A stretch of 64,000 bases of DNA from Rebecca billardiae RCC1528 (lineage: Eukaryota > Protista > Haptophyta), in assembly GCA_965240325.2 (NCBI GenBank), contig OZ251224.1, positions 3,720,001 to 3,784,000 of the forward strand. The letters are read 5' to 3'. The notes beneath the pieces were generated by a model. That model was given only the letters and a program-made list of their open reading frames with translations, made no database searches and was not told the DNA's origin. Made by a program: the position numbers and the translations under genes. This document shows, one piece after another, positions 4,793 through 57,145 of the stretch; the first letter of the stretch is position 1, and each line of letters opens with the position of its first letter.

Positions 4793-5005
<213 letters not shown>

Positions 5006-5188: not shown

Positions 5189-8100
5189 TCAAACTCGACT
5201 TCTGCCGTTCGAGAGCCCGCTGCTGGGCCTGGGTCCCAGCGCCGCGTGGGTAGCAGGCGGGTGCATGACAGGGGACACCGGCCTCGCGCCGGCCGTAGGC
5301 CTACTCAGCCAAGTGGATGGCCCGGCCGTGGACGAGGCCACCGCCGCCTTCGCCCACGCAGGCAGCTCAGGGACCTCGATGCCGAAGTACGACGTGTTCG
5401 TGGGAGCGACGGAGGGAGCGACGGCCATGCCCGTGGTGCGGGGTCGCTTCTGTGGAGAGCCGCTGTAGCTGTTGCCAGTCGCCGTCCGGGTGAGGACGCG
5501 CATGCTGCGGACGGGCGAGCCGTTGGTGGACGTGGCGACGGTCTCGTTGTCGTCGTCATCGAACTGCAGGCCCTGCCACGCGCCGGTGCGGATGATGCGA
5601 TCCACGAGCTTCGGGTCCTTGCCCTCGATCGACGTGAGCAGCTCGATCGCGCGCGCCGTGTGCGGCACGTAGTAGTAGAGTGCCGGCCCTGCGAGCAGCA
5701 GTGGCAGCGCGTTCTCAACAAAGAAGAGGACCCAGAAGGCGAGCAGGTCGGTGACGAGGGCCTCGGAGAAGTTGAAGCCGGTCGACGCGTCCGAGAGCAG
5801 CAGGAGCAGCGACGCGAAGATGGCGGTCGCGCACACGGCGATCGCGACCGCGTGCCGCCACGCCGTCTGCTGGAAGATGCCCCACGCCCACGCGAGGTTG
5901 CCCACGCCAAAGCTGAAGAGAGAGAGCAGCTCGACGATGATGAGGAGGCGGGTCTGCGTGAGCGAGAGCTTGTCCGCGTTCTGCCCGCGCGCGTACAGGT
6001 GCCACAGCACGCTGTTCCTGTCCTCGCTCAGCGTGTGCAGCGAGTTGGCCGAGGTGGCGAAGATGAGGTACTGGCCGGAGAAGACGAGCTTGGTCCAGCC
6101 GATGGCGAGCGCGGAGAGCATGAACGCGCGCTCGGGCGTGGGGATGGGCGTGCGGTGGCGCAGGCTGGTGTAGATGGACGGGTCGACGCCCAGCCGGCCG
6201 CGCTTCACGCGCTCCACCTCGCGCAGCAGCACCACCTCGAGCACGACGTGCGTGAGCAGCAGCGCGGACGTGACCGCCTCGACGATCCCGATCACGACCA
6301 GCTGCGCGATCGCGGAGATCCGCTCAAACCGGTCGGCCACGTTCGCCTCGACGACGTTCACCTCGTTGAAGGCGACGGCGGAGGCGACGAGCAGCGAGCA
6401 CGCGAGCGGCGCGAGGATCATGATCAGCGTGCGGTGCCCCGAGCGCGACTGCGAGTACGCCACCGACCAGCCGCCCGCGCCCACGATCATGAGCGTGAGG
6501 CCGTACACGGACAGAAGGTACGGCGTGAAGTAATTCGTCTCGTGCTCAAACTGCATGCGGCGGAAGAGGAGCCAGACGCCGAGGGACATGCACGCGGTGC
6601 CGTCGAGCAGCGTGATCACCGCGCAGAGCCGCGCGGAGAGCTGCACGTCCTGTATGCCCTGCACGCGCCACAGCGTCACCTTGCCCTCGCGCTCCTGCCT
6701 CGTGCGGAGCGCGCGCTCGGCGGCGAGCGCCGTGCGGAAGCGATTGGCAACCGTCGTGAGCGCGATGCACATGATGGCGGAGAGCATGGTCGCGACGCCC
6801 CACGCCACGCTGTACACCTGGAGGTGCTCCTGCAGCGCCTCCCGCGACGCGATCCCCGAGGGAAACACCGGCCGGACTGACTCGTACACCGTGCCCACCA
6901 CCTCGGACGCGACGCCAGCGAGCCAAAAGCTGCCGACCGCAAAGCAGAGGAACACTGCGCCGAGCAAGCCCTGCAGCAGCATGTAGCTCTGCGCCAGCGC
7001 GAGCGAGCGTCGACGGCCGCTCACGAAGCCGAGCAGCGAGAGCATCAGCGCGAAGCCGCCGAAGCCGAGCATCGTGACCGGCGCCCACAGCGAGAGCACA
7101 GCGGCCATCCAGGCCAGGTCCTGCGCGGTCGCGCGGCCACAGGCGGTGGCGCGCGGCGCGGCGAGCGCTCGCCGCGGGTGAGACGCAGGCGCTGGCCGCG
7201 CGCGCGGGCCGGGATGCGCGGTCGCGCCGGGGCGGCGGCGGCGCAGCAGACAGGCGACGCGCGCGGGGTCGAGCGCGCACCACCGTGGCGTAGACAGCGA
7301 GCAGCACCAGCCCCATCATCACCGACGCAAACGCCGCGTTCGATCGGTCGAAAGTGGCGCGCACGCGCCTGAAGCGCTCCGCGGCGCGCGCGTCGGCTGC
7401 GTCGACGTCGACGATGGGCACGCTGGGCCCGTAGCGCACGCTGGGGCCCTGCGAGTGCTGCGTCGGCGTGACGCGCATCACCAGCGGGCGCTCCGTGCCC
7501 GTGCTGTCGGACACGCCGTCCACAAAGCCGCCGAGCACGAGAGAGCCAAACGGCAGCGCCCTCCCGCCAAAGTCTTCGGGCAGCTGCTGCTTGCCTACCA
7601 GCTCCTCCAGAAAGGGCCCCCACTCCGCGCGGCCGCCGAAGACCTTGACCTGCACCAGGCCCTCCGGGTCGAGCAGCTTGGTGATCCGCGCCTGCACCGA
7701 CGAGAAGAAGGACGGCGCGTTGATGATCACCATCAGGCCGAGCCGCTCCGCGTAGTGCTTCTGCGCACGGGCGCGGGGGCGGCGCGCGCGGGGCACGGGT
7801 GGGGCGGCGCGGCACGGGGCGCGGCACGTTGGCGGCGGCGGCGGCGGGGGCGGGCGGGCAGGCGTGAGCCTGGGCTCATGCGCGGGCGCGCGTCGCCACC
7901 GCACGCCCAGACCGAGCGCACGCCGCGCCAAGACGCGCCACGCGCCACGCGCCACGCCGCGCCGCGCGCCGCGCGCGCGCGCCTGGTCGAGCAAGCCGAT
8001 CGTCGAGAGGAAGTGGAGCAGGTGCGACGAGAGCATTGAGAGGTGGAAGCCCTCGAGGTCGATGACGACGAGGACCTTGTCCACGATGTGGCCGCGCTGG

Positions 8101-8765
8101 GAGGTCGCGCGGATGAGCTCGTCGGCCACCTGCTCGCTCTCCCACACGTGGTGCCGCGTGATCGCCTCCCAGCTCGTCACCCCGAGCAGTCGCTTCAACT
8201 CAAACTTGCCGTAGAGCGAGTACAGCACCGGCCGGCCGTACCGGTCGCTGCCGTGCCAGAAGTGGGGGAAGAAGCTGAGCGCGAGCTCGGGGTCGCAGCC
8301 GATGGCCTCCGCCGCCGTCATCTCGCGGATCCCGTTCACGTTCATGCGCTCGCGCCACGCGAAGTCGTCGCGCGCGAGCGCGATCGCGCCATCGATGCGG
8401 AAGCGCTTTGTGCGCAGGAAGCGAAGCAGGTACACCTCGACGGTGGCGTCACGGCTGGCTGCGTACTCAAGGTCGAAGCCGCTACGCTCGAGCTGCAAGT
8501 GCATCTGCTCCAGAGCGTGCGCCTGCTCGAAAGTCAGGGAGCCCACGTGGCCTGAGCCGTACAGGCGCTTCAAGGGCTCGGGGTAGCGGAGGGGCTCTCT
8601 GCGCGCGCGTGGGGGGTGCGTTGGCCGCGTGGGTGGAGCGAGCACAGTGAGAAGAGGCGAGATAGGGCGGGGTGCCAGTGACGCAGCCGGCATGCGCGGT
8701 CGGGGGGCGTACTCTTCATCGTCGTTGGCTGCCGTTCTCTTGCCGTCTGGAAGAGGTCCCAGCAT
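5189..8765 (-). CDS. CRAL-TRIO/Sec14 domain + two tetraspanin-like 4-TM repeats + EBP/EXPERA-like domain (fusion); introns ~8599-8712, 7761-7982 (GC-AG), 7121-7280
   Basis: Sec14 motifs YLLRFLR, HGSDRYGRPV, VIDLEG, DQ|KHYAERLG..IINAP..F, LPEDFGG; splice 7280/7120 joins in frame to the 5189-7108 ORF; then two 4-TM units and an EBP-like unit (LWHLYA..AD..VELLS..WRH..FWVLFFVENAL). Confidence 0.8.
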
Positions 8766-9109
8766 GCTGCCACTGGTCAGCCCGCTTTGCGCTTGCACAT
8801 CGTCCCGGCTCCTTGTGAAGACAGTGTGAAGTGTTCGCACGCGCGCCGGTTGGAGGTGGCTAACTATAACGTAAGGTATTCGGAGTATGATATTTCGGGC
8901 GACGAAATGCTTTGATGGCCTGATAGGTGAGCTTGCACCAGACTCATTTGTGCTTCCTATGACGTTACAGTATTTCTCAGTGTCGGCGGGCCGCTGATTG
9001 GTCGGGGTAGCCCATTAGTAGCCCCATCGACCTGACAATCATCGAAAAAGAACCAGCACAGGGTTTTTCCTGCAAGAATTGGGGCCTCTACGGTTTTCTG
9101 CTCGGCGCA

Positions 9110-10021
9110 ATGGCGGCGATTGTCGTGTTCGCGATGGCATCGATGCCGGCGTTCGCCTCCGCTCGGGTTGCCCTTCCGATGGCAAGGGGGATGAGCGCGC
9201 CGCCTCTGCAGTGTGGCGCTGGGCGCGTCGCCGGGCGATTTGCAGCATCGCGCCGCGGGGTCGCATGCGCGCGTGCGAGCGTGCGAGCAGCTGACACGGA
9301 GGAGCCCGACATCGTCGAGAAGATGTTCAAGTTCTTCTTCGGCGAGCAGGAGGCGCGGCCCATGGGCATGGGGCGCACGTCTGGCGCGCCGGACACGTAC
9401 CCGGCGACGCTGACAGAATCTGCGGAGCCGGTGGCTGGCGACTCCCGCGAGGCGGCGGAGCTGCGCCCGCTGCTGAAGAACACCAACCTGGAGACGCGCA
9501 AGCTGAAGGTCGTGTACGACGCGGGCCGGCACGGGTGGAGCGCGCGCGCGTTCCACCAGAAGGTCGACGGCACCGGGCCGTGCATCATGCGCGCGGTGAC
9601 CAAGGGCGGCTGCGTGTGCGGCGCCTACGCGCCCAAGGGCTTTGCCGGGATCGGCGAGTACCGCGGTTCGATCGCCGCCTTCTTGTTCACGTGGCCCGAC
9701 GGTCCGCCTTGCACGTTTGAGCGCGTGATCAAGCTGCAGAAGGCCGGCGGCGCCAGCCTCGCGACGATCGACATCCCCGAATCCGGCCCGCGCTTCGGCG
9801 CGGACGGGCTCGCCGTCCCGCTCGAGGACGGCTCGGCGCGCAAGGCGTTCTGCAAGCTCGGCCCGTACTACAAGAAGATGCCCGATGGCTCGGGCTCGCT
9901 GTTCGGGCCGCGCGACAACCCGCAGGTGACCGAGCTGAAGGAGCTGCGCATGTACGCCGGCGTGTACGCCGAGGACGAGCGCATCCCCTTCTCTGGCGCC
10001 ATCCCGTTCGCGATCGAATGA
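9110..10021 (+). CDS. TLDc-domain (OXR-like) protein, probably plastid-targeted
   Basis: TLDc motifs VYDAGRHGWSARAFHQKVDG, GAY, AFLF, GPRFGADGL; N-terminal signal peptide plus Arg/Ala-rich transit-like peptide. Confidence 0.85.
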   Translation: MAAIVVFAMASMPAFASARVALPMARGMSAPPLQCGAGRVAGRFAASRRGVACARASVRAADTEEPDIVEKMFKFFFGEQEARPMGMGRTSGAPDTYPATLTESAEPVAGDSREAAELRPLLKNTNLETRKLKVVYDAGRHGWSARAFHQKVDGTGPCIMRAVTKGGCVCGAYAPKGFAGIGEYRGSIAAFLFTWPDGPPCTFERVIKLQKAGGASLATIDIPESGPRFGADGLAVPLEDGSARKAFCKLGPYYKKMPDGSGSLFGPRDNPQVTELKELRMYAGVYAEDERIPFSGAIPFAIE

Positions 10022-29786: not shown

Positions 29787-30325
29787 ATGGCTCCGCCGCC
29801 GACTGCGCCGGCGCGAGGCGGCGTGGAGCCGCGCGAGCGGTGGGCGCACGCGGCGAGGCGCGTGATGGGCGCGCTGCGCGCGGAGGCCGAGCCTCGGAGC
29901 CCGGCTGAGGGCGCCCGCCCGCTCACCCGCGTCTCCAGCGGCAACAGCGACTGGACGGAGCACACGACGGCCGATGGCTTCCGATTCGTGCACAACCGGC
30001 GCACGGGCCTCTCGGACTGGGAGCGGCCGCTGGCTGGGCGCGGGCTGGCGCACACGATGCCCGCGCCCGTGCTCTCCCCGCGCGACTCGTACTCCACCGA
30101 CGAGCTCTCCGCCACCGACGGCGACACCGACTCTGGCGGCGAGGACGTCGAGGTGAAGGCGGGTGGCGGCGCGCCCCGTGCAGGCCGCGGCGGGGAGGCG
30201 AACGGCGTGGCGGCGGCGGGGCGCTCGCCGCGCGGGCTCGCGGGCTCGCCCTCGTCCTCCTCCGCTGCGCGAGCCTCGCCCTTCCGCCGCGCGTCCGCCT
30301 CGACGCCCGCCCGCTCCTCGTCGCT

Positions 30326-30356
<31 letters not shown>

Positions 30357-32551
30357 GGCGGCGGCGTTGGGCTGCAGGGCGGGCCAGCGCGGACGACGCC
30401 GCCCTCGCCGCTGCCGCCGCTGCCGCCGCCGCCGCTGCCGCCGCTGCCGCCGCCGATCACGCCGCTGCCCGCCTCGGGCCTGCCCGCGCCCGTCGCCGCT
30501 GCCGCCACCATGCCCACGCCCACGCCGCCGCCCGCCGGCGGCGCGGCCGGCGGCGCGGCCGCCGGCGGCGCGCTCGTGCGAACGGAGGGCGACGGCTGCG
30601 GCAGCGGCGGCGCGCCGCCCGCGCCGGCGGCGGCGAGCTCGGCGGCGGTGGCGGCGGTTGGGCCCGCGTGCGCGTGCGCGCACGCGCCCTCCACCCCCGC
30701 CGCGCACGCCGCCCCCAAGCCGCCCTCCCTGTCGCCCACTCAGCTGGAGGAGCGCGAGCGCGCGCGCCGCACGCGCGGCCGCGTGGCGCTTGAGCTCGTC
30801 GAGTCGGAGCGACGGTACGTGCGTGCGCTGCGCGCGCTGACGAAGCACTTCCAGCCCGCGCTCGAGCACGTCGCGCCGGCGTTCGTCGCGTCCATCTTCT
30901 CCGGGCTCGACGTGATCGCGCACGTGAACGGAGCGCTGCTGGCGCGGATGGAGGCCGTGCTGCCCGCACACGCGATCGGCAGCGCGGCGGCGGCGGCGGC
31001 GGCCGTGCCGCCCGCGGCACTCGGCGCGGCGGCGGGCGCGGCGTGCGGCGGCGGCGGCGGTGGCGGCACTCCGGCGCTGGGCAGCCCTGCGCTCGGGCCG
31101 ACTCCGGGCGCGGGCGCCGCGCCGAGCACGCCCGAGCAGCCCGCAGGCCGGTCATGCGACGAGGCCGCGCCGGCGCCGCCAGCGCGCAACGTGCCCCCGG
31201 CCGCGGCGCGCAGCGCCCCCGCGCCCCCGCCGCTCGGCGGCGGCGCGGCCGCGCCGGCCGCGCGCGGCGGCGCCGGCGGCGCTGCGCCGGCCGCGGCTGC
31301 GGACGCGCCCACCTCCGCGCCCCCCTCTGCCGAGGGCTGGGAGTACGCGCTCGCCGAGCTCTTCACGACGGACACGCTGCAGCAGCTCGTGCCCGCGTAC
31401 AAACACTACATCGGGTGGGCGCACGCGCGCGCGCGTTCGCGTTTTCGCGCGCCGACCGCGCGGCCGCTGTTGCCGCCACCGCGCCGGGCGGCCGGGCGGG
31501 GCGGAGGGCTGTGTGTGACCCACGCAGCGGCCGCCCGCGTGTGCGCTCACGCGCGCACGCACGCGCACCCGCGCGCGCAACCCCCCTCGCCCCCGCCGCC
31601 GCCCGCGCTGCCGCGCGCGCCCGCCGCCCCGCGCGCGCGCTCCGCGGCGGCGCGCGGCCGCAGCCACTACGCCGCGTCCGCGCGCACGCTCGGCGCGTGC
31701 ATGCAGGTGCCGGCATTCGCGGCGGCGGTGCGCGAGGCGGAGGCGGCGCACGCGGCGCGGCACCACGCGGCCGCGGCGCCGGGCTCGGCGACGACGCTGC
31801 CCGACCTGCTCGTCCAGCCAATCCAGCGCGTGCCGCGGTACAAGCTGATGCTCGAGCTTCTCGAGAGAACCTCTGCGCTCGAGGGCAGCGGGCGCGCCGA
31901 GCTCGCGCGCCGCGCGCTCGCGCGCGTGCGCGCGGTCGCGCGCGCGCTGAACGACGCGCTGCGTGACCTCGAGCTGCTGGAGCGCGGGGTGCAGCTGCAG
32001 ACGCGGCTGCGCGGGCGCTCGGCGCCGCTGCTCGACGCGCCGCACCGCCGCTGGGTCGTTGAGACCAGCGCGCAGCGCCTCCAAACCCTGCGCTTCCCGC
32101 CGAGCGGCGCGCTCGCGGAAGGGTCGCCCGCATGGCGGCCGCGCGTGCTTGTTCTGTTCAACGACGTGGTGCTGGTGGCGCGGCAGCCGCGCTCGTCGGC
32201 GGGCGGCGCGGGCGGCGAGCAGCCGCAGCAGCAGCCGCCCGCGCACGCCGCGCGGCGCAGCGACCGCAGCCTCGAGCTCTGCGCCCTCGTGCCCCTCGCC
32301 GGCTGCACCGTGCGCGCGCTCACCGCCGCCGAGGCGGCGCTAGGCACGCTGCGCGCGGCGGACGCGCACGCGGGCGCGCGCGGCGGCGGCGCGGGCGCGG
32401 AGGGCGGAGGGGGCGCGGCGGCGGGCGGGGATGAGGGCGCGCCGCGGTGCGCGGGCGGCCTGCCCGCGCACCGCGCCTCCGGCCGCGCCGTCGTCGACAT
32501 CGGCTCGAGCGACGAGAGCGGAGATGGCGAGGGCGCGGAGGAGGCGGCTGC

Positions 32552-32632
<81 letters not shown>

Positions 32633-34565
32633 CGGTGGCGAGGCGGATGGCGAGGGCGGCGGGGCGTGCGCGCCGCGCGGCGCGCGGGCCTCCGCGCCCA
32701 CCGAGGACGAGCTCCGCGCGCGCTCCCTCGCCCTCGAGCAGCCGCTCGCGCGCGGCGCCACGCGCACCGCCGCAGGCCAGAGGTTCGACTTGGAAGTCGT
32801 GTTGCCCGCGGGCGCGACGCGGTTCGTGCGCGGCCGCAGGCTGACGCTCGAAGGGGTGGACTCGAGCGGGCGGATCGTGAGCTTCGCGCGGCAGCTGCCG
32901 CCGAGCGCGCGCGCGGCGTTCAGGCTGGGCGACCGGCTGGACGTCCGAGCCCTCGAGCCCGAGGCGGCGGCCGAAGGCGAAAGCGGTGGCGGCGGCGATG
33001 GCGGCGGCGATGGCGGCGGCGATGGCGGCGGCGGCAACGGCGGCAACGGCGGCGGCGAGGACGCGCGCGCGCACGCGGCGGCGTCGTCGCCGGGCGTCGG
33101 CGGCGGCGGCGTGGCGCAGCAGCAGCAGCGGCTGCGCGTGCGCGTGCTGCGCGAGCCGCTGCTGCTGCTCTTCGCCACAGCTGCCGAGCGCGACGAGTGG
33201 CGCTCGCGCCTGCTCACCTTGATCGAGGCGGTGCCGGCGCTGGTCGGCGCGGCGGGCGGGCGCGCGCGCGCGGGCTCGGCGGCGTCGGCTGCGCCCGAGC
33301 ACGGCCGTGGCCGCACGCTCTCGCTCGAGTCGAGCCGCTCGTCGCTCGCGGATGGCGGCGGCGGCGGCGGCGGCGGCGCGGCGAACGCGCCGCGCGCGGG
33401 CGCGAACGGGCGCGCCGCCGACGCCGACGCCGCCGACCCGGCCGCGGCCGCGGCCGACGCGGCGGCGGCGCGCGCGCGCGGCGGCGGCGGCGGCGGCGCG
33501 CCGGGCGGCGGCGCGCCGGGGGCGGGCACGATGGGCGAGGGCACGGAGGAGGAGGACGGGGCGAGCTCCGCGGAGGAGGGCCTCAGCGCGTCGGAGCTCG
33601 CCGCCGCGTCGGTGCAGCACTCGCCAGAGCCGATGCGCGCGGGCTGGCTGCTGCTGCGCGGCCAGCGCGCGGCCGGCGGCGCGGCCGGCGGCGCGGCCGG
33701 CGGCGCGGCCGGCGGCGCGGCCGGCGGCGCGGCCGGCGGCGCGGCCGAGGGCTGGCGGCGCGTGTGGGCCGAGCTGGCGCCGAGCGGGCTCGAGCTCGAG
33801 CTGTGGCTCTCGGCGGAGGAGGCGACGGCGGCGGACCGGTGGTGGGACGGCCGCGCGGGCAGCGGAGCAGCGCACGCCGCCGCTTCGCTCCCACTTGAGC
33901 CGCGCGCGCGCTCCGCGTCGGCTGCCGAGCCCGCCGGCGGCGCGCGCCCGCCGCCGCCGCCGCCGCCGCCGCCCGGTGCCGCGGCCAAGCGCCAGCTCTC
34001 GACGGGAGCGCTCGCGGTGTGGGGGCGGCGCTCGAGCGCGGAGCAGGTGGGGTCGGTGGACGGCGCGGCGGCGCGCTCGCCCGCCCTTAGCCCGCCGCCC
34101 GCCGCGCCGCGCGCGCACGCCGCCGCGGCGCCGCAGCCCACTGGGCCGTTAGCAGTGCTGGAGCTGAGGCGATGGCAACACACTGTGACGCACGTGCGCG
34201 CGCCGCGCGGCCCGCCGCGGCCCGCCGCCGCCGAGGGCGGGCCGGCTGTGGAGCGCACGGTGCGCGCGCTGCAATTGTACTGCCCGGCGGAGGGCGAGGT
34301 CGTGCTCCGCGCCGTCGACGACGACGCCGACGACGCCGCCGCGTCGGCGCGGCACCGGCCCGGCGGCGCGGGCGCGGCCGCCGGCGCCGGCATCGACGCG
34401 TGGCTCGGCGCGCTGCGCGACGCGCGCCGCCGCGCCGAAGCGGTTTCGGCCGAGGTCGCCAAGATCACCGAGTTCTCGGGCGCGCGCGCCGCGGGCGGCA
34501 GCGCGCTCGGCGGGCCGCTCGCGCGCTTCGGCTGGCTGCGTGTGCTGCCGGTGCCGGAGGAGGAG

Positions 34566-34597
<32 letters not shown>

Positions 34598-36395
34598 GCC
34601 GCCGCCGCCCGACGCCGCGGCCGCGGCCGCCGCCGCGCTCGGCGGCGGCGCGCGCGGCGCGGCCTCGGCGGAGGCGGCGGCCGCGTGCGCGCCACTCCGT
34701 TGGATTACCCTGTCTGCGGGCGCTGAGCTGCTCGTGCTCGAGTCCCCGCTGGCCACGCGCCCGCTCCTCGCGCTCTCGCTCGCCGAGTGGGAGCCCTCCA
34801 TGGCGGGCGCGCACGGGTTCGACCTCGTCTGCCGCGACGCGCGCAGCCTCGCGCCTCGCCTCGCGCCTCGGCCGGGCTCGGCGCCGGGCAGTGGCGGCGG
34901 CGGCGCGGACGGCGGCGGCGGCGGCGGCGCGCGCGCCGCTGCGGAGCACGCGCTGCGCTTCATCGCCGAGTGTGCGGAGGAGCAGGCGGAGTGGCTCAAG
35001 ACCGTCTCGACGCTGGAGGTGCGGCCCTATCGCACGCAGCCCACAACGGGCGAGCTGCCGCCTCTGACACTCCGCTCGCTCACGCTGCAGCCAGCCGGCG
35101 GCGGCGGCGGGGCCGGTGGTGGTGGTGGCGCGCGCGGCCTCGCGGTGGCGCAGCACGCGGCGCAGCCGCCGCAGCCGCCGCCGCCGCCGCAGCAGCAGCA
35201 GCAGCAGGCCGCGCCCTCGCCCTCGCTGCAGCAGCAGCAGCAGCCGTTCGGCATGACAGTCGGCGAAGTGCTTGGCTTGGCCGTCGTCACCACCGTCGCG
35301 CCCGCCTCCGCCGCGCACGCCAGCGGGCTGCGCGGCGGCGAAGTGATTGTCACGGTGAACGGCCGGTCGTGCGTGTCCGCGGCGCACGCGTTCAACCTGC
35401 TGAGGGAGGCGGCGGCGGCGGGGTCGGCGGTGACGCTGATCCTCTCGGCCGAGCGCGTGTGCGCGCCCACGCCCGCGCCGCGCCCGCCGCGCGGCCCAAG
35501 TCCCGCCGGCGAGCCGTTTGACTCACTCTTCGACACAGCCGAGGGCGGGCGGCCGCTGGACGAGGTGGCCGCGGCGGAGGCGCTGGGCGCGAGCGTGGCG
35601 CGCGTGCGCGCGCTGCGCGCGCACGCGCTGCGGCTCGAGCGGCACTTCCGCGCGTGGCGCGGCGCGGAGGCGGCGCACGCGAGCGCGCTCGCCGCGATCG
35701 GGCCGCCGCCGCTCGACGAGCAAGCTCCGCCGCCCGCCGCCTCGGCCGGCGCCGCGCCGCCGCCGCCGCCCTCGTCGCCGCCGGCCGGCACCGCGACGGT
35801 GGCGGCCGCGGCGCCGCGCGCGCCGACCGACGCCGAGCTGCGCGCCGCGTTCGAGCAGCAGCTGCGCGCGCACCGGCTGCGCGCGGGCGGGCTGGGCACG
35901 CAGGAGCAGGCGCTGCGCGCCGAGGCGGCGCGCGCCGAGCTCGCCCTCACCAAGTGCGAGCGGCGCGGCCGCGACGCGCTCGGCGCTGCGTCGCTGGACC
36001 AGCTGGCCGCGCACGCGCGCGCGCGCTGGCAGGCGGTGGGCCTGGCGAAGCAGCAGCTGCAGCAGGCGAAGATCGACTTCGACCTGGCGGCGCCGCAGCT
36101 GCTCACCTCGCAGCCCGAGCGCCTCTCCGCGCTCGCCGACGGCGTGAGCGACGCACGCCACGGCCTCACGCGCGCGCGCGCCGCCTACGACGACGCCGCG
36201 GCCGCCGTGCACGCCGCGCGCGAGCAGCTGCGCGCAGGGCCGTACGCGCACGCGCTGCGCGAGCTGCTCGACGCGGCGCGCGCGCTCGAGGGCGTGGTGG
36301 CGCGCGCGCGCACGCAGCTCGTCGTGCACGGCGGCGGCGGGCCGCCCGCCGGCGGCGCGGCGGCCGGGGCGGCGGGCCCGGCGGTGCACGTGTAG
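29787..36395 (+). CDS. RhoGEF: WW - DH - PH(s) - PDZ - C-terminal helical/coiled-coil; in-frame intron 31415-31663
   Basis: WW DWTEHTTADG..HNRRTGLSDWERP; DH ELVESERRYV..SIFS..LLVQPIQRVPRYKLML; PH LVLFNDVVL..ERDEW, RAGWL, RFGWL..EEQAEWL; PDZ PFGMTV..VAPASAAHASGLRGGEVIVTVNG. Confidence 0.85.
33668..33747 (+). repeat. 12-bp coding tandem repeat (GCGGCCGGCGGC, ~6 copies; AAGG peptide)
   Basis: Seen directly within the RhoGEF CDS. Confidence 0.9.
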
Positions 36396-43176: not shown

Positions 43177-46100
43177 ATGCTCGGCAGTGGTGTCTCGCCG
43201 CGCAGAGCCGGAGCGCCGGCCGACGGCGGCGCGGACGAAGCAGGCCGCGCATCCATCGCGCCCAGCCGGAAGGGCCTGGCTGGGCGGGCTGAGCGACTTG
43301 TCGACAGCGGGCGGGCCATCACGACGAGGCTCGCGGAGAGCGCGGCTGCAGCGCGCGAATCGAAGCACCAGGTCGAGCTGCGTGGCCCGCAGCCCGCGAA
43401 GGTCAAGGGCATCCTCAAGTCCGGCCACGACCGCAGAAGGAAGGACGAACGCGTCAAGTGGCGCACCGTGCTCGCGGGCGAGGAGGCCAACGTGCAGGAC
43501 GACCGCATCAAGCAGGCTCAGGACGTGGAGGAGCGCGAGCGGCGGGCGAGGCTGCTCAACATTGCCAAGCTCGCGCGGCTGCCCACGCTGACGATCGAGG
43601 AGCTGATGATTCCGCTGCGCCTCGCGTTCCCCGAGCTTATCGTGAACAGCCCCGTCGCGATGATCCTCGACATCATCAGCGACTCGTTCGAGCTCTGCTG
43701 GATTGTCAAGACGATCCGCGAGCAGCCGACGCTGGAGGAGGTGCGCAAGATGGATGAGGAGCAGAGCGGGAGCAAGGCGGGCGACGAGCAGTCAAAGATC
43801 GAGCTTTACACCGCCGCGCACGCCGTGCGCGACATTGGCACGGTCCTCTCGCTGCACTTCTCGCGCGGCATCTACATCATCTCGGGCGACGACACGCTGT
43901 GGACGCTCGTGCAGGTGGTGCGCACGGTGCGCGTGCGCGAGCTCGTGGGGTACGTGCAGCAGATCAACAACGACCTGACCACGAACGTCAAGTTCCTCGC
44001 CGTGTACAAGTTCTCGCTCGTGCTCATCTCCGTGCCGCACTGGGTGCGCGCGCGCGCGGCCTGCGCGCGCGCGGCCTGCGACGCGGCACCGCGGCACCGC
44101 CCCGGCACCGCGGCGCGCGACACCCAGCGACCTCTCTGACCGAGCCCTGCCCCGCGCGCGTGGCTGTGCGCGTGCGCCTCGCAGGTGGCGTGCATCTGGT
44201 GGGCCCTCGCCGCGCGCTGGGGCCGCGAGGTGCTCGCGCTGCCGTCATGGCCCGCGCAGGTCCCGCTGCTCACGAGCAACCGGGACCTCAACGCCGCTCA
44301 GATGAGCGACGTCGACAACTACATCATGTCGCTGTACATGGCGTGGATGGGCCTCACGTCGATGGGCTACGGTGCGCGCGGCAGCGATCCGGTCCCCACG
44401 CGTGCGCGCTGCTGCTCGCCGCGCCGCGGCCGCGTGCTCACGTGCGCGCCGCCTCGCGCCCGGCATCGCGCGGCCGTGCACGCGCCCGCCTCCAGGCACG
44501 CTCGTGCTGACGATCCAGCAGGAGGTGATCTTCGCGGCGTTCGTGGCGATGCTGCAGATGGTCTTCTACGCGTTCGTGCTCGGTACCCTCTTCCACTACC
44601 TCGTGCGCACCGACGAGAACACCGTGCACTACAACGAGCTGATGAAGGCGGTGGACGAGTACGTGAGCCACCGCAAGTTGCCCAAGGAGCTCGCCGCCAA
44701 GATCCGCGCGCACTACGCCTTCCAGCACCGCAAGCAGGCGGCGGGCACGGAGCGCATCTTCGGGCAGATGCCGCTGTCGATGCGCACCGAGGTCGCCGTC
44801 TCGCAGCACAGCCGCCAGATGCACGCCACGTGGGTGTTCTGGGCGTGCACGCCGCAGTTCCTCAGCTACGTCGCGCTCTACCTGCGCGAGCGCTTCATGA
44901 TGGTGCGTGCCGCGCGCGCCGCGCGCGCCGTGCGGCTTGCTTCAAGGCGCACCGCGGCCGCGGCTGGCGCGCGCGCGGCGTGCTCACCACACCGCCCCAC
45001 ATCATCGCGCGCGCGCGCCGCCTCGCGACTGCGCAGCCAAGCGAGACCCTCTTCAAGCGCGGCGACGGCGCGGCCGAGCTCCTCTGGTGCGTCGGCGGCT
45101 CGCTGCACGTCGGCAAGGGCGATCAGCACATCACGACGATCCGCTCCGACCTCGGGCCGGGCCAGATCGTGGGCGAGGTCGCGTTCTTCATCGGCATCCA
45201 GCAGCAGTACTCGGTCGTCGCCTCCTCCAAGGGCGAGGTGACGCTGATCGTGCTCACGAGCTCCGCCTTCGAAGAGATCATCGCTTCACACCCCGAGCAG
45301 ACAGACCAGATCACGCAGAACCTGCTGCGCAAGTACGGCCTCGACAAGAACGGCGCCGACCTCACCTCGGGCGGGTTCAACGAGCAGATGGACGAGGACG
45401 AGCAGCGCGAGTACGAGGCGCTTCGCTCGACCATCCGCGCCGCCATCCTCGAGCGCAACGAGGAGCTTTTCGCGCAGATGTCGACGGCGGTGCACTACGG
45501 CGACGTCGAGACGGTGCGCGCGCTCACGGCGCGCGGCTTCGACCTGGGCGCGGGCTCGTACGACATGCGCACGCCGCTCCACCTCGCCTCGATGGAGGGC
45601 CACCGCACGGTCGTGAAGGTGCTGTGCGAGCTCGGCGCCGAGGTGAACACGGTCGACCGCTTCGGCTCGACGCCCATCAAGAACGCGGTCGAGGGGAAGC
45701 ACGGCGCGGTCGCGGACGAGCTGTCGCGCTTCGGCGCGCGGCTCTCGCTGGTCCACCCGGCAGCGAGGCTGCACGCCGCGGCTAAGGCAGGCGACATGCA
45801 CACGATGACGATGCTCGTCGCGCACGGCGTCGACATCAACTCGGTCAACTACGACGGGCGCACCGCGCTGCATGTGTCCTCCTCGGAGGGCAACGCGCGC
45901 GTCTCCGAGTACCTCATCTCCAACATGGCCGACGTGCACGCACGCGACCGCTGGGAGCACTCGCCGCTCGACGACGCGATCGACAATGACAACCCGCTCG
46001 TCGCGCAGATGCTGGTGCGCTCGTCGGCGATGCCGGACATCAAGACGCTGGCCGAGCTGCTGCGAGCATCGGCCGCTGCCGGCGACGCCAATCGCCTCAA

Positions 46101-49100
46101 GTTCCTCCTGTCGTTGGGCGTCGACATCGACGCGGCCGACTACGACGATCGGACTGCGCTGCACTACGCGGTGCGCTCGGGCTCGGTCTCGTCGACGCAC
46201 TCACTCGTGTGCGCGCTCGCGGACGTCAACCTGACTGACCGCTGGCTGCGCCCGCCGCTGCTCGACGCGCTCGAGGTGAGCCCGAGGCTCGCGTCCGTGC
46301 TGCTCCAGGCGGGCGCGCGCGTGCCGGACAGCCACAAGGACGACCCGGAGATCACGGCCAAGGTGCGCGCGGCCGAGGCGTCGGACCTGTACGACGTGAA
46401 CCGCGCGATCAGCGACATGTCCAAGCAGCGCGAGAAGCTGAACGGCGAGCAGCGGAACAAGTCGCGCGAGGTCGAGGTCGCCATCACGGGGCTGGCGGAG
46501 GAGCTGAGCGCGCTCATGCGCGCGCAGCGCGGCCTCTTCCGCCAGGTCTCCAAGCACGCCGACATCTGGATCGCCGAGTACGGCGAGGAGGGCGACTCGG
46601 ACACCGACTCCGACATGGACCCCGAGGACGTGAACCACGACGATGTGGACGACGGCGACGACGAGGAGCACGCTTCGTTCTCGCATGGCGCACGCGCGAC
46701 GTCGAAGCAGTTCATCAAGCTCGTGCTGCAGCTGCCGAAGGCGGAGGCCGGGCTCATCGAGCTGCGCGATCTCTTCTCCAAGCGGATGTCGCCCGACGCG
46801 TTCAAGGGGCTGTCGCCATCGGAGCGCAGCCTCCTCGAGGATTCGGAGCTGTACAGCATGCTCAAAGAGGAGCTCGACATCCAGCCCGATGAGGCAGATC
46901 GCATCGTCGACGACATCTACGCCGAGCTCAAGGCGTACCTTGGCGACGTCGCGCCCGCGCCGCCCGAGCGGCTGCGCACCGACGCTGTCCACAAGATGAA
47001 CGGCTTCCAGCCAGTCGAGGAGGCAGACGAGCGCAGCCCTGCCGAGGCCGAGGGCGCCGCCGTGCCGGGCATCGCGATCGTCGGCGCGACGCCCGACACG
47101 AGCGCTCGCCACGGTGGGGGCTCGGACCGCGTGCGCGCCATGATCCGCCGGGGCTCAGGCACCGGCGCGACGCTGCTCGACCTCTCCAAGCACCTCAACG
47201 ACCAGCAGAGCAGGAGCAGCCCGCCATCGCGCCGCCGCGCGGGCGCTCGACCGTCTCTTCGTGCGCTGGGGCGCAATGCCGCGCCGACGAGCTCCGAAGC
47301 GGCCGACATCGACCCCGTCTTTCTCTCGGACCTTGGCCACGTCGTCCTCTTCTGCTCGCAGCGCTTCATCACAGTGCTGAACGAGCGGTTCGAGTCGACC
47401 GTCCAGCCGGTGCCAGGCACGCCGCACCTGGGCAAGGAGGCGGACGGGGCGCGTGCGGGCACCGACGAGCAGGACAGCCCGGCAGACTGGCTCGGGTCCA
47501 GCCGCAGCCCTTCCAACCGCAACAGGCTCTCGCGGGGCATGCAGCAGGGCATGCAGAACATCATGCGCCTCAGCACGAGCAACGTGGAGTCGCGCGGGTC
47601 GGCGCAGGATGGCGCGCCCGAGGCGCAGCCCGCCACGCCGTACGCCGACGTGGGCCGTGCCTCGTCTGTGATCATGAGCCTCTTCAAGGTCTTCGACACG
47701 GAGCGCCGCGGCAGCATTCGCCTGCGCGACGTGAAGCGGCTGCAGGGCGAGCTGGGCGAGATGGGCTCGCACGAGATCAAGTCGCTGCTGGCGTACCTGA
47801 TGGGCGCGTCGAGCACGCTGCGCGTGACGGCTGAGAGCGAGGAGGACGACGGCACGCCGACCCCGTTCGGCGGCCGCCGCGCCGGAGCGGCGCCCAACGC
47901 CGCGCTCGCGGCGCCCGACGCCGCGCTCGACGCCGAGCTGCGCCGGCGCACGGCCTCTCCGACGCGCCGCTCGCAGCGCATCTCCCTGAGCCTGCACCGT
48001 GGTGGCGACGCGGATGCGAGTGCGAGCGCTGAGTCGAAGGCGGCTAATGTCGCACCGTCGGGCGAGGTGAGCAAGCTCTTGCAGGCGGCGCCCGCTGGCG
48101 AGGACGAGACGGTCACACAGACGTGCAGCAGCAACTCCTCCAGCTCCTCCTCCGATGGGAACGCGCCGTCGAAGCCCGAGCCGGCCGCCGCCGCCGGCGC
48201 CGGAGGTGCCCCCGCGCCAGGCACGAACGGCGGCGCCGCCGCCGCAGCGGGGCTCGGCACGGAGGCGGGTGGCGACGCCGACGCGCAGTCGCGCATGGCG
48301 CGCGAGCGCAAGCCGCAGTCCATGTCGGCCGCGCAGTTCTTCGTCGGCGTCTCCTCCTGGATCCTACTCTCGGTCGCGGACGAGCTGCCGGATGCGGAGG
48401 CCGCCCGCGACGGCGCGCTCGTGCCAAAGCTCGGCAGGCACGAGCAGGACACGGGCGCCAACTCGTTTGTGGCTAAGGCAGCGCTCGCGTCGAACGCCAA
48501 GGCGGCGAAGGCGGAGGCGGCGGCGAAAGAGGCGCGCGAGAAGGCGATCGCGCGCGAGCTCGACGCCGCGCTCAGCTCGGTCGCGGCGTGCGTGCTGCTC
48601 GCGGACAACCTGCAGCAGCGGATCGACACCGGCCGCATCGGCGCGAACGACGCGGCCGAGCCCGCTGTGCTGCTCAAGGCAGTGCTCCACTCCGTGGTCA
48701 TCCCAGAGGGCACGTCCGAGCGCCACCTCGCCGAGTGGGCGGAAGCCCATCTCGAGATCACGTTTGCGAGCGCGTCCGACGCGATCCGTCCGGTCGAGGA
48801 CGATCCGGCGAGCGCGCGCGCCGAGCGGGACAGCGGCGCCGAGCGGCAGCACGCGGAGCAGCACAAGCCGGTGCTCGCCGAGGCTGACGCTGGCGAGGAG
48901 CTGCCCGCCTCGTGGAAGGAGCTGACGAACAAGCTGCGCGAGCGCGGGACGGTGCTGCGCGACGAGGCGGGCGAGACCCTCAACACGCAGGCGGGCAAGA
49001 AGGGCCCGATCACAGCCGTCCTCGAGGCCTTCGGCGTCGGCTCGGCGGCGGTCGTGCCGGTGAGCGACGACAAGTATGGCGACACGGCGAACGAGGGCGG

Positions 49101-52100
49101 CGGCGGCGCGGGCGTCTGGCCGTGGTACATCATGAGCGTGCGCTCGCGGTGGTACTCGTACGTGCACACGCTCTTCCTCGTGCTGGTGGTGTGGGACGCG
49201 CTCTTCGTGCCGATGCAGCTCGCCTACTTTGACGAGGTCGTGCGCATGCCGTGGGTGCTCGGCCTCAACCTCGCATTCGACGTGCTGTACGCGATGCGGA
49301 TCGCCTCGCTCTTCTTCACGACCTACATCAACGAGAAGTCGGTCGAGGTGTTTCGCCCGCGCGAGATTCGGCGGCAGTACCTCGCGGGCGACGCCGGGCT
49401 CGACCTCTTCGCGTGCTGGCCGCACGACCAGGTGCTCTGGGCGCTCGGCGTGCCGACGATGATCCGCTTCGGGCTGCGGCTGCTGCGGCTGATCAACTGC
49501 CGGTACGCGTTTGCGTCGTTTGGCCGCTGGAAGGCCAAGCTGAGCGACTCCGACTTCAGCTCGGGGCTGATCAAGAACCTGACGCCGCTCTTCATCACGA
49601 TCCACTACATGGCGTGCGTGTGGAACGTCCTCGGCTTCTCCGCGGTGGGGCACACCTTCGGCATCCGCACGTGGGCGGACGTGTACCTGCACTCGCAGGA
49701 AGAGGTGGGCTACTCTATGACGATCTACGACTCGTACGAGGAGAAGCTGGTCGACCACTACCTCACGTCGGTCTTCTTCGTGCTCTCGCTGATCTCGGCG
49801 CTGGGCGTGGCGCAGCTGCCGGCCAACATGATCGAGTTCTTCGCCTTCGTCGTGCTTGCGATCCTCAACATGACGATCTACGCGTACTGCGTCGGCGGGA
49901 TCTCCGGCCTCGTGATGAAGCAGGACGACGAGATCGTCGGCAAGCGCGCGCACCTTGAGCTCGTGCACGCGTACGTGCGGCACGTGCACGTGCCGCCCGA
50001 GCTGAAGGACCGCATGACCAAGTTCTTCGTGCAGCGGCTGCAGCACACCTCGCTCTCATCCGTCGACTCGGAGCAGATCTACTCGGGGCTGCCGATGCCG
50101 CTGCAGATGGAGGTGGCGGCGCACACGAACCGCGCGCTCGTGGGCAACTGCGCGCTGCTGCGCGGCTGCTCGACCGGCTTCCTCGACCGGCTCTCCTCGT
50201 CGCTGCGCGAGCGCGAGCTCGAGGCGGAGACGGTGGTCTTCCGCTCGGGCGAGGCGTGCAAGGAGCTGCTGCTGCTCGCGTCCGGCACCATCGAGACGAT
50301 GGAGGAGGGCGAGGGCGCGGACGACTCGGTGGAGACGCTCGGCCCGGGCGACACGGTCGCCGAGGTCGCCTTCGTCTTCCGCATCCGCCACTTCAAGACC
50401 GCGCGCGTCGGGCGGAACGAGAAGGCCTTCGCGTTCACGCTCGCGCTGGAAGCGTGCGCGCCACGCTCGTGCCCCGTGCGGCTGCGCGAGGCAGCGGCTG
50501 TCTTGCGCTCACTCACACGCACACCGCCGCGCGCGCGCCCCTCGCTCACGCGCCGCAGGTACAAGGAGCTGCTCAAGGCCTTCCCCTCGCAGGAGGACAT
50601 CGTCATGGACAACGTGGTCCGGCAGTACGAGGGTGCGTGCGGCGGCCGTGCTCCTGCGGCGCATCGGCTGCGCGCGCACCGCACCGCACCGCACCGCGCC
50701 GCACCGCGCCGCACCGCGCCGCACCGCGCCGCGCCGCGCCGCACCGCACCGCACCGCCGTCGTGTGCGCAGCCGCTGAGCCCTCCACTCCCTCGCCCATC
50801 GGACGCGTGCGTGCGCGTGCGTGCGCGTGCGTGCGCGTGTCCGCAGGCATGACCACCTCGCGCTCGGCGAGGTCCAAGGCGTCGAGCGGCGCGTCGTCGT
50901 CGCCGTCGTCGCACGTGTCGGACAACGTCTCGGTCGGTGGCCGGTCGGACAGGTCCAACGTCCAAGATGTTCAGACGCTGCACAACGTACGCGCGCCGGC
51001 GTGCTCGCCTCGCGTGCACGCGCGCCCGCGCGCGCTCTCCGGCGCGGGGGCGCGCGCGCGGGCGCCGGCCCGTCGCTCCCATCGCGCGCAGCACTGACGC
51101 CGCCCGCGCGGCGCCTGGGGCTCGCGCGCAGACGCTCGCCGAGGCCAAGCGCAAGCGCGAGGAGCTGATGCACGCGCGGCTGTGCATGGCGTGCGCCAAG
51201 GGCGACTACGACAAGGTGCGCCGCATGCTGACGGGCCGCTCGATCGACATCGACCACGGCGACTTTCAGGGGCGGCGCGCGCTGCACCTCGCGGCGTGCG
51301 GCGGCGACAAGCGCGTGATCGAGTTGCTGCTCGCGTCCCGCGCGGACGTGAACATCGAGGACAGCCTGGGCAACACGCCGCTCGACGACGCGCTCCACTC
51401 GGACAACGCCGACGCCGCGGCGCAGCTCGCAAGCCACGGCGGGCTGCACGGCTCGCGCGACGTCGCCGACGAGGTGTGCACGGCGGGCAGCCACGCCGAG
51501 GGCAAGCAGGAGCTGCAGCGGCTCTGCCAGTACGGCGGCAACGTGAACGCGGCCACGCACGAGCAGCGCACGGCGCTGCACATCGCCGCGTCCGAGGGCC
51601 GCGTGGACAACCTCCGGATGCTGCTCGAGAACAAGGCGGACGTGAACGCGCGCGACCGGCGCGGCTCGACACCGCTGCAGGACGCGCTGCTCGGCCGTCA
51701 GGACGAGGCGTGCGAGCTGCTGCTGCAGCACGGCGCGATGCTCGGCGAGTTCGACACGGCGCTGCACATGAACACGGCGGCCGCGCAGAACGACACGCTG
51801 CACCTCGCGCGGCTCGTCAAGTTCCGCTGCTCGATCAACACGCAGGACGAGCTCGGCCGCGCGCCGGTCCACCTCGCCGCGTCCAGGCGCCGGCTCAACG
51901 CGCTCAACTTTCTGCTCGACACGGCCGACATCGACGTCAACATCGAGGACAAGTTCGGGAACACGGCGTACGACGACGTGCTGCGCGACCCCGAGACCGA
52001 GGGCAAGGTACTGCGCGCGCTGCTCGAGACGCGCGGCGCCAAGCGCGGCGGCCACGTCAGCCACGCCGACATCCACGTGCAGCGAGACCTGGAGGCCGAG

Positions 52101-55900: not shown

Positions 55901-57145
55901 ATGGCAGCAGCCAGCACCGACCGACTTGGCGATCGTCCAGGCGCGACGGTCGATCAGTCAGGGGCGCAAGAACGAAAGCGCGGCTATTGGGCAACTGCGG
56001 AATACCACGCTGATGCAATATCTTTCCTGGAGGCAGCCAACTCGGCCGAGTATGGGGCAACCGGCGTCGCCAAGTCGCGCAAGCAGATGAGTGCGCTCAC
56101 AGAAGCAGCAGGCGCCCTGCAGGCTGCGAGCATCGCCATGGCAAAGGGCCATTCAGACGGCATCCTCTCTCGTAAAGATGATCCTGTCTTCTTCCTGCCA
56201 ACCGACCCGCGCAACGTCTGGGCGCTCGATGCGCGACTACACGCAGAGCGCCGAATGATCCAACTTCCGCTCGCAGGCTTGGAGCTGAGCCTCAAGCAGG
56301 TGCACTGGTCCGTGGTGAGCACGGCGGAGGACGGCGACGCGTCATTGGAGGGTCATCTCACCGGTGGCATCTGCTGGGACGGCGCTGTGGTGCTCGCGGA
56401 CTTCCTCTGCCACCCGCCGGCTGTGCTTGCTGCCCACCACCCGGGCCTGGCGCGACGGGGCGCCGGCGCGGGCTGCGCCTGGAGCTGGGCGGGCAAGACG
56501 GTGGTTGAGCTGGGCTGCGGCTCGGCCGCGCTGCCGTCGATTGCTGCTGCGTTGCAGGGAGCCTCCGTAGTGCTGGCCACTGACGGCTCCAAAGCGTGCG
56601 TCGAGCTGGCGCGCTCGAACGTCGCGGAGATCGGCCGCCAACATGCACCTGCCCGCAAGGTGAGTGTGTCGCAGCTGGTGTGGGGCCAAGGTGACGAGAC
56701 GCGCCTCCTGGCCGAGCACGGCGTCTTGGCTGCCGAACCAGAGGTGAGCAATCGGCTGACTGCTGACGTGATCCTCTGCGCGGACGTGTTGTACGTGCTC
56801 GCCAACCCCGGATGCTGGGGGGCGCTTCTGCGCACCATGCGCAGCCTGAGCGGGCCTGAGACGATTGTGCTCCTCACGTACACCGAGCGCGGCCACGCCA
56901 AGGGCTTCAAAAAGTTTCTCCGGCGCGCCGGCGAGGCGGGGCTTGCCGCAATCGAGGTGGCACCGCACCTTCTGCATCCAGTACACGCCGTTGGCTGCTC
57001 TCAACGGCTCGAACAGCACGTGGGCAACGTCCAGCTTTTCTGTCTCTCAGCGCTACAGACTACGACTGGCGGCCACTGCTCATCAGACTCAGTCTCAGCA
57101 GATCACCAGATGACCAGTGCGTCCGCCAGTGTGACCAGTGAATAG
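55901..57145 (+). CDS. METTL21/EFM-type (family 16) protein-lysine methyltransferase
   Basis: TGGICWDGAVVLADFL, VVELGCGS, VLATDG, LVWG, DVILCADVLY. The 5' end may include upstream exons from ~55278. Confidence 0.85.
   Translation: MAAASTDRLGDRPGATVDQSGAQERKRGYWATAEYHADAISFLEAANSAEYGATGVAKSRKQMSALTEAAGALQAASIAMAKGHSDGILSRKDDPVFFLPTDPRNVWALDARLHAERRMIQLPLAGLELSLKQVHWSVVSTAEDGDASLEGHLTGGICWDGAVVLADFLCHPPAVLAAHHPGLARRGAGAGCAWSWAGKTVVELGCGSAALPSIAAALQGASVVLATDGSKACVELARSNVAEIGRQHAPARKVSVSQLVWGQGDETRLLAEHGVLAAEPEVSNRLTADVILCADVLYVLANPGCWGALLRTMRSLSGPETIVLLTYTERGHAKGFKKFLRRAGEAGLAAIEVAPHLLHPVHAVGCSQRLEQHVGNVQLFCLSALQTTTGGHCSSDSVSADHQMTSASASVTSE

Follow-up and report, generated by a model that had tools for sequence, protein, structure and literature searches.

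In a 64,000-nt stretch of the genome of the haptophyte Rebecca billardiae RCC1528 (contig OZ251224.1, positions 3,720,001 to 3,784,000; referred to below as the window), the minus strand at window positions 8765-5189 was found to hold one gene of four exons, with a spliced coding sequence (CDS) of 3081 nt, 1026 codons and a single terminal stop. We regard it as practically certain that this is one gene for one polypeptide, in which a Sec14 (CRAL-TRIO) domain is followed by two units of four transmembrane helices each (4-TM units) and an EXPERA domain resembling the sterol isomerase EBP, and that the fusion is no splicing artefact. Sequence comparison places the Sec14-to-EXPERA architecture in a small, conserved family from algae, the same domain order being present in at least ten relatives. 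Taken as a whole, the account towards which we lean is that of an intact, spliced 12-helix gene of this family, with a role in lipid handling or sensing and not as an isomerase. The host DNA is GC-rich (66-77%) and eukaryotic. The features of the gene are as follows.

8765-8763, minus strand: start codon (ATG)
8713..8765, minus strand: exon 1, the ATG and 17.7 codons of N-terminal leader; donor GA/GTACGC (slashes mark splice sites)
8599..8712, minus strand: intron A, 114 nt, GT..AG
7983..8598, minus strand: exon 2, CRAL_TRIO_N region and N-terminal half of the CRAL-TRIO (Sec14) domain
7761..7982, minus strand: intron B, 222 nt, GC..AG, 87% GC
7281..7760, minus strand: exon 3, C-terminal half of CRAL-TRIO, a linker of ~60 aa and TM1
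7121..7280, minus strand: intron C, 160 nt, GT..AG
5189..7120, minus strand: exon 4, TM2-TM12, C-terminal tail and stop; a single open reading frame (ORF), seen as a 639-aa ORF at 5189-7108
5191-5189, minus strand: stop codon
7533..8537, minus strand: Sec14/CRAL-TRIO domain, aa 39-299, contains intron B
6725..7352, minus strand: 4-TM unit 1, aa 360-515, contains intron C; tetraspanin-like TM1-TM3, 34-aa TM3-4 loop, TM4
7337-7281, minus strand: TM1 of unit 1, in exon 3; aligns with unit-1 TM1 of P0002, P0004, P0013 and P0014
6206..6652, minus strand: 4-TM unit 2, aa 540-688; weak tetraspanin resemblance, 15-aa TM7-8 loop
5636..6139, minus strand: EXPERA (EBP-like) 4-TM domain, aa 711-878
5192..5635, minus strand: C-terminal tail, aa 879-1026, low complexity, predicted cytosolic; GC content at third codon positions (GC3) 0.84

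Exons were read from the three minus-strand frames together with the junction sequences, and the reading was supported by codon periodicity, tblastn and the alignment of relatives. A preliminary description of the locus had given the same start and stop codons and exactly the same intron C, and had proposed that splicing joins a complete CRAL-TRIO domain to the membrane helices; the gene model, the two domain halves on exons 2 and 3 and the collinear relatives bear this out. Periodicity is strong in all exon segments (GC3 0.91-0.97; GC2, the second-position value, 0.38-0.48), exon 4 included (GC3 0.91-0.97), with typical values of 0.92 for GC3 against 0.47 for GC2, and the introns are flat at 0.74-0.87. 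When the spliced protein was aligned with full-length relatives, the alignment ran end to end with a gap at none of the junctions.

Among the relatives, contig L010 (carrying P0002) comes closest. It is collinear with window residues 21-936, with 59% of residues identical in the initial portion of the Sec14 domain and 39% in the stretch from unit 2 through the EXPERA domain into the beginning of the tail. The exon 1/2 junction DDEE/EPLRYPEPL resembles AEDLSALPYPAGL of L010, in which the 38-aa insert is absent, and intron A has no periodicity (GC by codon position 0.68/0.76/0.76). Exon 1 and intron A are nevertheless the part of the model held with least certainty, because the intron is in frame and stop-free and its retention would add just 38 residues. 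Intron B (CAG/GCGCGC...GCGCAG/AAG), which has a GC donor and flat GC across codon positions, is likewise in frame without stops, and reading it unspliced yields a misleading 764-aa ORF at 6546-8840. The junction over it, LLDQ/KHYAERLG, aligns gaplessly with DQNHYPERMG of all relatives, and the tblastn segments of the three relatives P0004, P0006 and P0013 break off precisely at 7983 and restart at 7763 with the same or the next query residue. Since the 160 nt of intron C are not a multiple of three, the Sec14 part and the membrane ORF come into one frame only once this intron is removed; the resulting junction VYATV/DLAWMAAVLSLWAP agrees with the continuous IYVTVDFPWVSELVGWSLWAP of P0002/L010, which reads straight across this site with no insert at the exon 3/4 junction.

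The C-terminal tail is longer than the tails of relatives and aligns with L010 over its first ~60 aa only; it may contain an undetected intron, or the protein may end earlier. A perfect (AT)103 microsatellite lies at 4798-5003, 185 nt past the stop codon, and the Logan contigs of the locus break there.

The preliminary description had suggested searching other protists for the same domain order, and such relatives exist. An exhaustive phmmer search with the membrane ORF against 1.8 billion cluster representatives returned only six. P0004 and P0006 are proteins of ~1000 aa with CRAL_TRIO, a weak Tetraspanin match and EBP/EXPERA, and P0006 is KAJ8603736.1 (UniRef100_A0AAD7UEG3) of the pelagophyte Chrysophaeum taylorii, deposited as an uncharacterised 'CRAL-TRIO domain-containing protein'. 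P0013 (1016 aa) and P0014 (988 aa) were added by a search with region 395-930 of P0004, and six metagenome loci by a search with a 3-sequence alignment. Word-indexed searches with the 639-aa membrane ORF or a 7-sequence alignment returned the query alone; low-complexity hydrophobic words probably swamped the candidates. L004 and L008 are single intronless ORFs of 994 and 991 aa on genomic contigs of 34 kb and 40 kb, respectively, in which CRAL_TRIO and EBP each exceed the Pfam gathering score. L005 and L006 are collinear, the contigs of P0003 carry ORF fragments ordered CRAL_TRIO, Tetraspanin (weak) and EBP, and P0004, P0013, P0014 and P0006 align with the spliced window protein end to end. 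L009 (P0013), a contig of 3115 nt, is essentially one ORF with short ends and looks transcript-like. Known members are thus one pelagophyte and marine metagenome or transcriptome contigs, the family alignment being shallow (~10 sequences). The window protein is the most divergent member (20-26% identity to most relatives); the C. taylorii protein shares the full architecture and the end-to-end alignment, but is only ~25% identical and differs by its His76 and Asp80 equivalents (EBP numbering), a retained Sec14 T..K pair and long acidic inserts. In a full-text literature search, no paper pairing EXPERA/emopamil with Sec14, CRAL-TRIO or tetraspanin was among those listed. The modules are known already, while their combination and the two subtypes described below are undescribed; the novelty claimed earlier for the architecture therefore stands with respect to characterised proteins, but the architecture is not unique to this genome.

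Pfam CRAL_TRIO (PF00650) matched exon 2 over profile positions 7-74 (E=6.7e-8, 32.9 bits) and exon 3 over positions 90-153 (E=3e-8, 34.1 bits), both above the cut-off; as the matches are split over the two exons, the domain is complete after splicing. The family Sec14 profile matched yeast Sfh1 and Sec14 with E=6e-42 to 2e-40, far ahead of SEC14L2, alpha-TTP and CRALBP. With yeast Sec14 and Sfh1 (YKL091C) the window protein shares the complete CRAL_TRIO_N and CRAL-TRIO fold region (E ~1e-41), but it differs at T236 and K239, which are critical for binding of the phosphatidylinositol (PtdIns) headgroup and are described as conserved across the superfamily (PMC7199851). Their equivalents in the alignment are:

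7661-7659, minus strand: Gly257, equivalent of Sec14 T236
7652-7650, minus strand: Gln260, equivalent of Sec14 K239

The pair is G/Q in the window (LDPEGLVQV) and G/N in L010, and T..K or T..R in every other member. The loss of these residues argues against a PtdIns-transfer function, not against the Sec14 fold, and makes doubtful the premise of the preliminary description that the domain binds PtdIns or phosphatidylcholine. Because the headgroup residues are lost, PtdIns would be an improbable ligand in the window subfamily; the ligand is probably another hydrophobic molecule, possibly a sterol or an isoprenoid. A Sec14-domain protein, PfSec14-2, has been reported to transfer cholesterol (cited in PMC13644383). 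Sec14-nodulin, Sec14-GOLD, MOSPD2 and Sec14/Sfh1 are soluble or single-pass proteins, whereas the window Sec14 domain is fused to a 12-TM region; membrane anchoring is common to the multidomain protein MOSPD2 and the window protein.

Twelve hydrophobic helices were found in the window protein, in line with the 'dozen or more' noted before. Basic residues favor the predicted cytosolic loops by 33 to 8 (positive-inside count), which predicts a cytosolic location for both the Sec14 domain and the C-terminal tail. The predicted N-in/C-in topology agrees with the known topologies of tetraspanins and EXPERA domains, TMEM97 included. It would place the EXPERA TM9-TM10 loop, which corresponds to the EBP loop with W101-Y111, in the lumen or outside.

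The eight helices between the Sec14 and EXPERA domains had been parsed as two tetraspanin-like repeats, and this is the weakest part of the observation, consisting of sub-threshold sequence matches. Unit 1 of all nine family members compared matched Pfam Tetraspanin (PF00335) at E<=1, and no other family recurred; the best match was P0002 (2.3e-8, 34.4-35.0 bits), the sole member above the gathering score of 32.1. Against the PDB, the unit-1 profile matched TSPAN15 (9.6e-5) and TSPAN7 (1.8e-4), followed by CD9, CD81, CD53 and UPK1B, in register over TM1-TM3. Unit 2 matched Pfam Tetraspanin at E<=1 in five of the nine members, best in the window (E=1.2e-5, 25.6 bits against the cut-off of 32.1, profile 7-120), and gave no significant match in the PDB. 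Sequence profiles thus give moderate support to unit 1 being tetraspanin-like, and unit 2 appears to be a 4-TM unit of uncertain affinity, its tetraspanin resemblance being marginal. An internal duplication of units 1 and 2 is not claimed, as their hhalign comparison was not significant (probability 0.9-17%).

With tetraspanins such as CD81, CD9, TSPAN15 and TSPAN7 the units share four helices, a short first loop, cytosolic ends, the weak-to-moderate profile similarity over TM1-TM3 and, by eye, an Asn in unit-1 TM1 (SNAAF). They differ in occurring twice in tandem within a larger protein. They also lack the tetraspanin hallmark, a large extracellular loop whose conserved cysteines include the CCG motif and form disulfide pairs (PMC7105497): neither between TM3 and TM4, where the loop has 34 aa, nor between TM7 and TM8, where it has 15 aa, is there any cysteine, and the absence of a CCG loop had been noticed earlier. 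Likewise, the TM3 glutamate of CD9 (E103) is unmatched in the alignment. A structural comparison proposed in the preliminary description gave no support: with an AlphaFold model of units 1 and 2 of P0004 (pLDDT 76.7, pTM 0.65), no tetraspanin was among the 50 Foldseek matches listed from the PDB (best E=0.035, TM-scores ~0.19), a comparison by which all-helical membrane bundles are poorly discriminated. The AlphaFold model of the window membrane ORF (7 sequences) had a pLDDT of 53, and Foldseek returned generic helical proteins with meaningless TM-scores of ~0.12. In TM8 of unit 2 (6316-6218, minus strand) an intramembrane acidic residue, the E of GIVEAV, was observed, and aligned relatives carry E or D; it may be a lipid-headgroup or proton-binding site inside the membrane.

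These data have to be weighed against the strongest alternative, namely that the eight middle helices are a lineage-specific scaffold unrelated to tetraspanins and that the matches reflect chance or compositional similarity of hydrophobic segments. It would account for the single member that reaches the gathering score, the lack of a significant PDB match for unit 2, the non-significant hhalign comparison of the two units, the absent Cys-rich loop and the Foldseek result. It does not readily explain why tetraspanins dominate the unit-1 match lists in register, why PF00335 matches unit 1 of every member with no other family recurring, and why window unit 2 matches the same profile region. We consider the scaffold explanation unlikely, but a serious contender. 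The claim of tetraspanin-like repeats thus held in part for unit 1 and only marginally for unit 2, and to speak of three sterol-binding module types, as was done before, overstates the case.

The last four-helix unit had been read as EBP/EXPERA-like, and this proved correct. The family EXPERA profile matched human EBP (PDB 6OHT) with E=7.5e-24 over EBP TM2-TM5, with no other meaningful match; for the window domain alone EBP was the only match in the PDB (E=0.0086), and the L010 domain alone gave 1.8e-8. The Pfam EBP model (PF05241) did not detect the window copy, and relatives scored 29.5-43.5 bits against a cut-off of 25.7. Eleven positions are major determinants of EBP activity, and acidic residues at positions 80 and 108 are conserved across the EXPERA superfamily (PMC4263179). 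H76, E80 and E122 form a proton relay, W196 stabilises the carbocation, and either H76A or E80A alone abolishes activity (PMC6549186). The corresponding residues in the window are:

6091-6089, minus strand: K727, equivalent of EBP H76 (WTKLVFSG)
6079-6077, minus strand: S731, equivalent of EBP E80 (WTKLVFSG)
5932-5930, minus strand: E780, equivalent of EBP E122, kept (VELLS)
5713-5711, minus strand: N853, equivalent of EBP N193, kept (ENALP)
5704-5702, minus strand: P856, equivalent of EBP W196 (ENALP)
W, equivalent of EBP W101, kept
Y, equivalent of EBP Y104, kept
L, equivalent of EBP R110
S, equivalent of EBP Y111
S, equivalent of EBP T125

The calls made previously by eye (H76 to K, E80 to S, W196 to P, with E122 and N193 kept) were all correct in the alignment with EBP. 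The window protein thus resembles EBP in its C-terminal four helices, which are homologous to TM2-TM5 in N-in/C-in orientation with W101, Y104, E122 and N193 kept, and differs by H76 to K, E80 to S, W196 to P, R110 to L and Y111 to S, and in having no EBP TM1. The complete EBP residue set is present in no family member. Position 80 is Asp in eight of nine relatives, Gln in P0003 and Ser in the window; His76 together with Asp80 is kept in P0006, L004, L008 and L006. Members of the pelagophyte type have H76, D80, D108, R110 and Y111, but V122 and R196. Across the family, position 122 is Val or Asn in most relatives, and position 196 is Arg or Gln in other members where present.

It could be supposed that the protein catalyses sterol delta8-delta7 isomerisation or a related sterol modification, with Sec14 delivering substrate or removing product (substrate channelling). 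The EXPERA domain is indeed nearer to EBP than to any other solved protein, with no TMEM97 match, several active-site residues are kept (E122, N193, W101, Y104 and, in the family alignment, D108), and four relatives retain His76 and Asp80. However, the window has Lys and Ser at the two positions of which either substitution by alanine kills EBP activity, the cation-pi residue W196 is Pro, with Arg or Gln in its place elsewhere, and E122 is itself replaced in most relatives. Further, the EXPERA proteins sigma-2/TMEM97 and TM6SF2 bind cholesterol and have no isomerase activity even with catalytic residues present. An enzymatic role of this kind is considered improbable. A function of the window domain as delta8-delta7 isomerase is unlikely because Lys and Ser stand in place of H76 and E80 of the proton relay, and a sterol-binding, non-catalytic role is the most economical reading of the residues, because TMEM97 and TM6SF2 keep catalytic residues and bind cholesterol yet are not isomerases; the window protein is likewise a likely sterol binder rather than an isomerase. 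Known EXPERA proteins stand alone (EBP, TMEM97) or in tandem (TM6SF1/2), in contrast to the window EXPERA domain, which lies downstream of Sec14 and eight helices.

K76, S80, E122, N193 and P196 are common to the window and L010 (GWFKLVFSG, AMETLS, SNVLP). With the same residues present in L010 despite a membrane-region identity of just 39%, the K/S pattern looks more like a signature conserved within the subfamily than like random decay, and the site appears constrained, though changed. Only in the window and L010 are canonical sites altered in both the Sec14 and the EXPERA modules. This defines, at the level of sequence, two subtypes, one with H/D and the PtdIns residues kept, the other with K/S and the PtdIns residues lost, and suggests that the two modules are functionally coupled, because the canonical sites of both changed together in the same two proteins. 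The term 'probably inactive' used in the preliminary description is therefore upheld as far as the catalytic pair is replaced, and is misleading as far as it implied decay.

Decay was considered in its own right: the window copy might be a decaying paralogue or incipient pseudogene, whose altered Sec14 and EXPERA residues reflect lost function. Its divergence, the two private changes in the EXPERA domain (R110 to L, Y111 to S), the extra luminal-loop insertions, the failure of the Pfam EBP model and the frame disruptions of L010 would fit. This is very improbable, as 1026 codons are free of internal stops, codon periodicity is strong in every domain (GC3 0.92), splice signals are intact and the changed residues are common to L010 at 39-59% identity, implying selection since divergence. 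Hardly credible is a gene-model artefact in which two genes lie head to tail, one for Sec14 (8765-~7280) and another for the membrane protein with its start at ATG 7108: that ATG does open the 639-aa ORF, but single intronless ORFs of relatives span the entire domain order, the P0002/L010 reading continues across the junction, the parts are just 160 nt apart within GT..AG bounds with splicing restoring the frame, and two genes would halve a structural unit, since TM1 of unit 1 lies in exon 3, upstream of intron C, and TM2-4 in exon 4.

Several observations weigh against the preferred reading of an intact, non-enzymatic lipid-handling protein. The two Logan contigs carrying the locus are genomic, not transcripts, and are 100% identical to the window, introns included. 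L010 changes reading frame twice (L010:600-650 and L010:1440-1500). The window copy is an outlier of the family, with R110 to L and Y111 to S private to it, and some relaxed constraint is possible; its EXPERA luminal loop carries extra insertions. The equivalent of EBP D108 depends on the alignment, being D in the family alignment and Q in the pairwise one, and an acid/base chemistry of another kind is conceivable with Lys and Ser. Finally, the structural models yielded no usable fold matches. With regard to L010, it was also observed that 16 codons corresponding to LLDQKHYAERLGLMVI are missing from this contig at the site of window intron B; skipping of a micro-exon, misassembly or pseudogene status could account for its frame changes and the missing codons.

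On this lipid-handling reading, binding, sensing or handing over of a sterol or another lipid is the most likely function of the window protein. The EXPERA domain would form a pocket that faces the membrane laterally and takes a sterol or a lipid resembling one. The tetraspanin-like units may also hold a sterol-like lipid in the bilayer, by analogy with CD81, which senses cholesterol in an intramembrane cavity (PMC7863897; PMC7105497). The Sec14 domain, tethered by the ~60-aa linker, would operate at the cytosolic leaflet of the membrane in which the EXPERA domain sits, where it could take up or deliver the lipid held by the membrane part, or report occupancy of the EXPERA pocket. Taken alone, this mechanism is put forward tentatively and may well prove wrong.

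In the remainder of the window, a divergent ORF with a TLDc domain (Pfam E=3e-10) was found at 9110-10018 on the plus strand; it starts 345 nt from the ATG of the Sec14-EXPERA gene, and the two may share a bidirectional promoter region. Two uninterrupted ORFs of ~2200 aa lie further downstream on the plus strand, one at 29787-36392 with RhoGEF and PDZ domains and one at 44185-50775 with cyclic-nucleotide-binding, ankyrin-repeat and ion-transport domains, which looks like a large cNMP-gated-channel-like protein. An ORF at 55901-57142 (plus strand) has a lysine-methyltransferase-like domain (Methyltransf_16, E=1.2e-11). Across the 64 kb, tblastn of the relatives revealed no second copy of the fusion gene, an Rfam scan gave no matches and rRNA is absent.

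A bolder and distinctly doubtful proposal, to which we give somewhat less credence than to the scaffold explanation, is that the Sec14-EXPERA protein is a hard-wired machine for hand-off or sensing of a sterol (or sterol intermediate), in which the EXPERA pocket, flanked by tetraspanin-like lipid-holding units, passes its ligand to the Sec14 domain or gates it. If true, the protein would, as a 'Rosetta-stone' fusion, predict that separate Sec14-like and EXPERA proteins (EBP, TMEM97/sigma-2, TM6SF) are functional partners in other eukaryotes, animals included, and would define two functional subtypes, H/D and PtdIns-competent versus K/S and PtdIns-incompetent. The natural fusion of Sec14 and EXPERA in several algal lineages suggests that one lipid, within one membrane, is the target of both domain types, which bears on what the non-enzymatic EXPERA proteins (sigma-2/TMEM97, TM6SF1/2) do in the cell and on the choice of the second ligand of Sec14 proteins. 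As a single polypeptide it is a tractable system for ligand-binding and transfer assays and for structure determination, and the two subtypes offer a natural structure-function comparison. The finding, which is without relevance to pathogenicity, is of interest to basic cell biology and to algal lipid metabolism.

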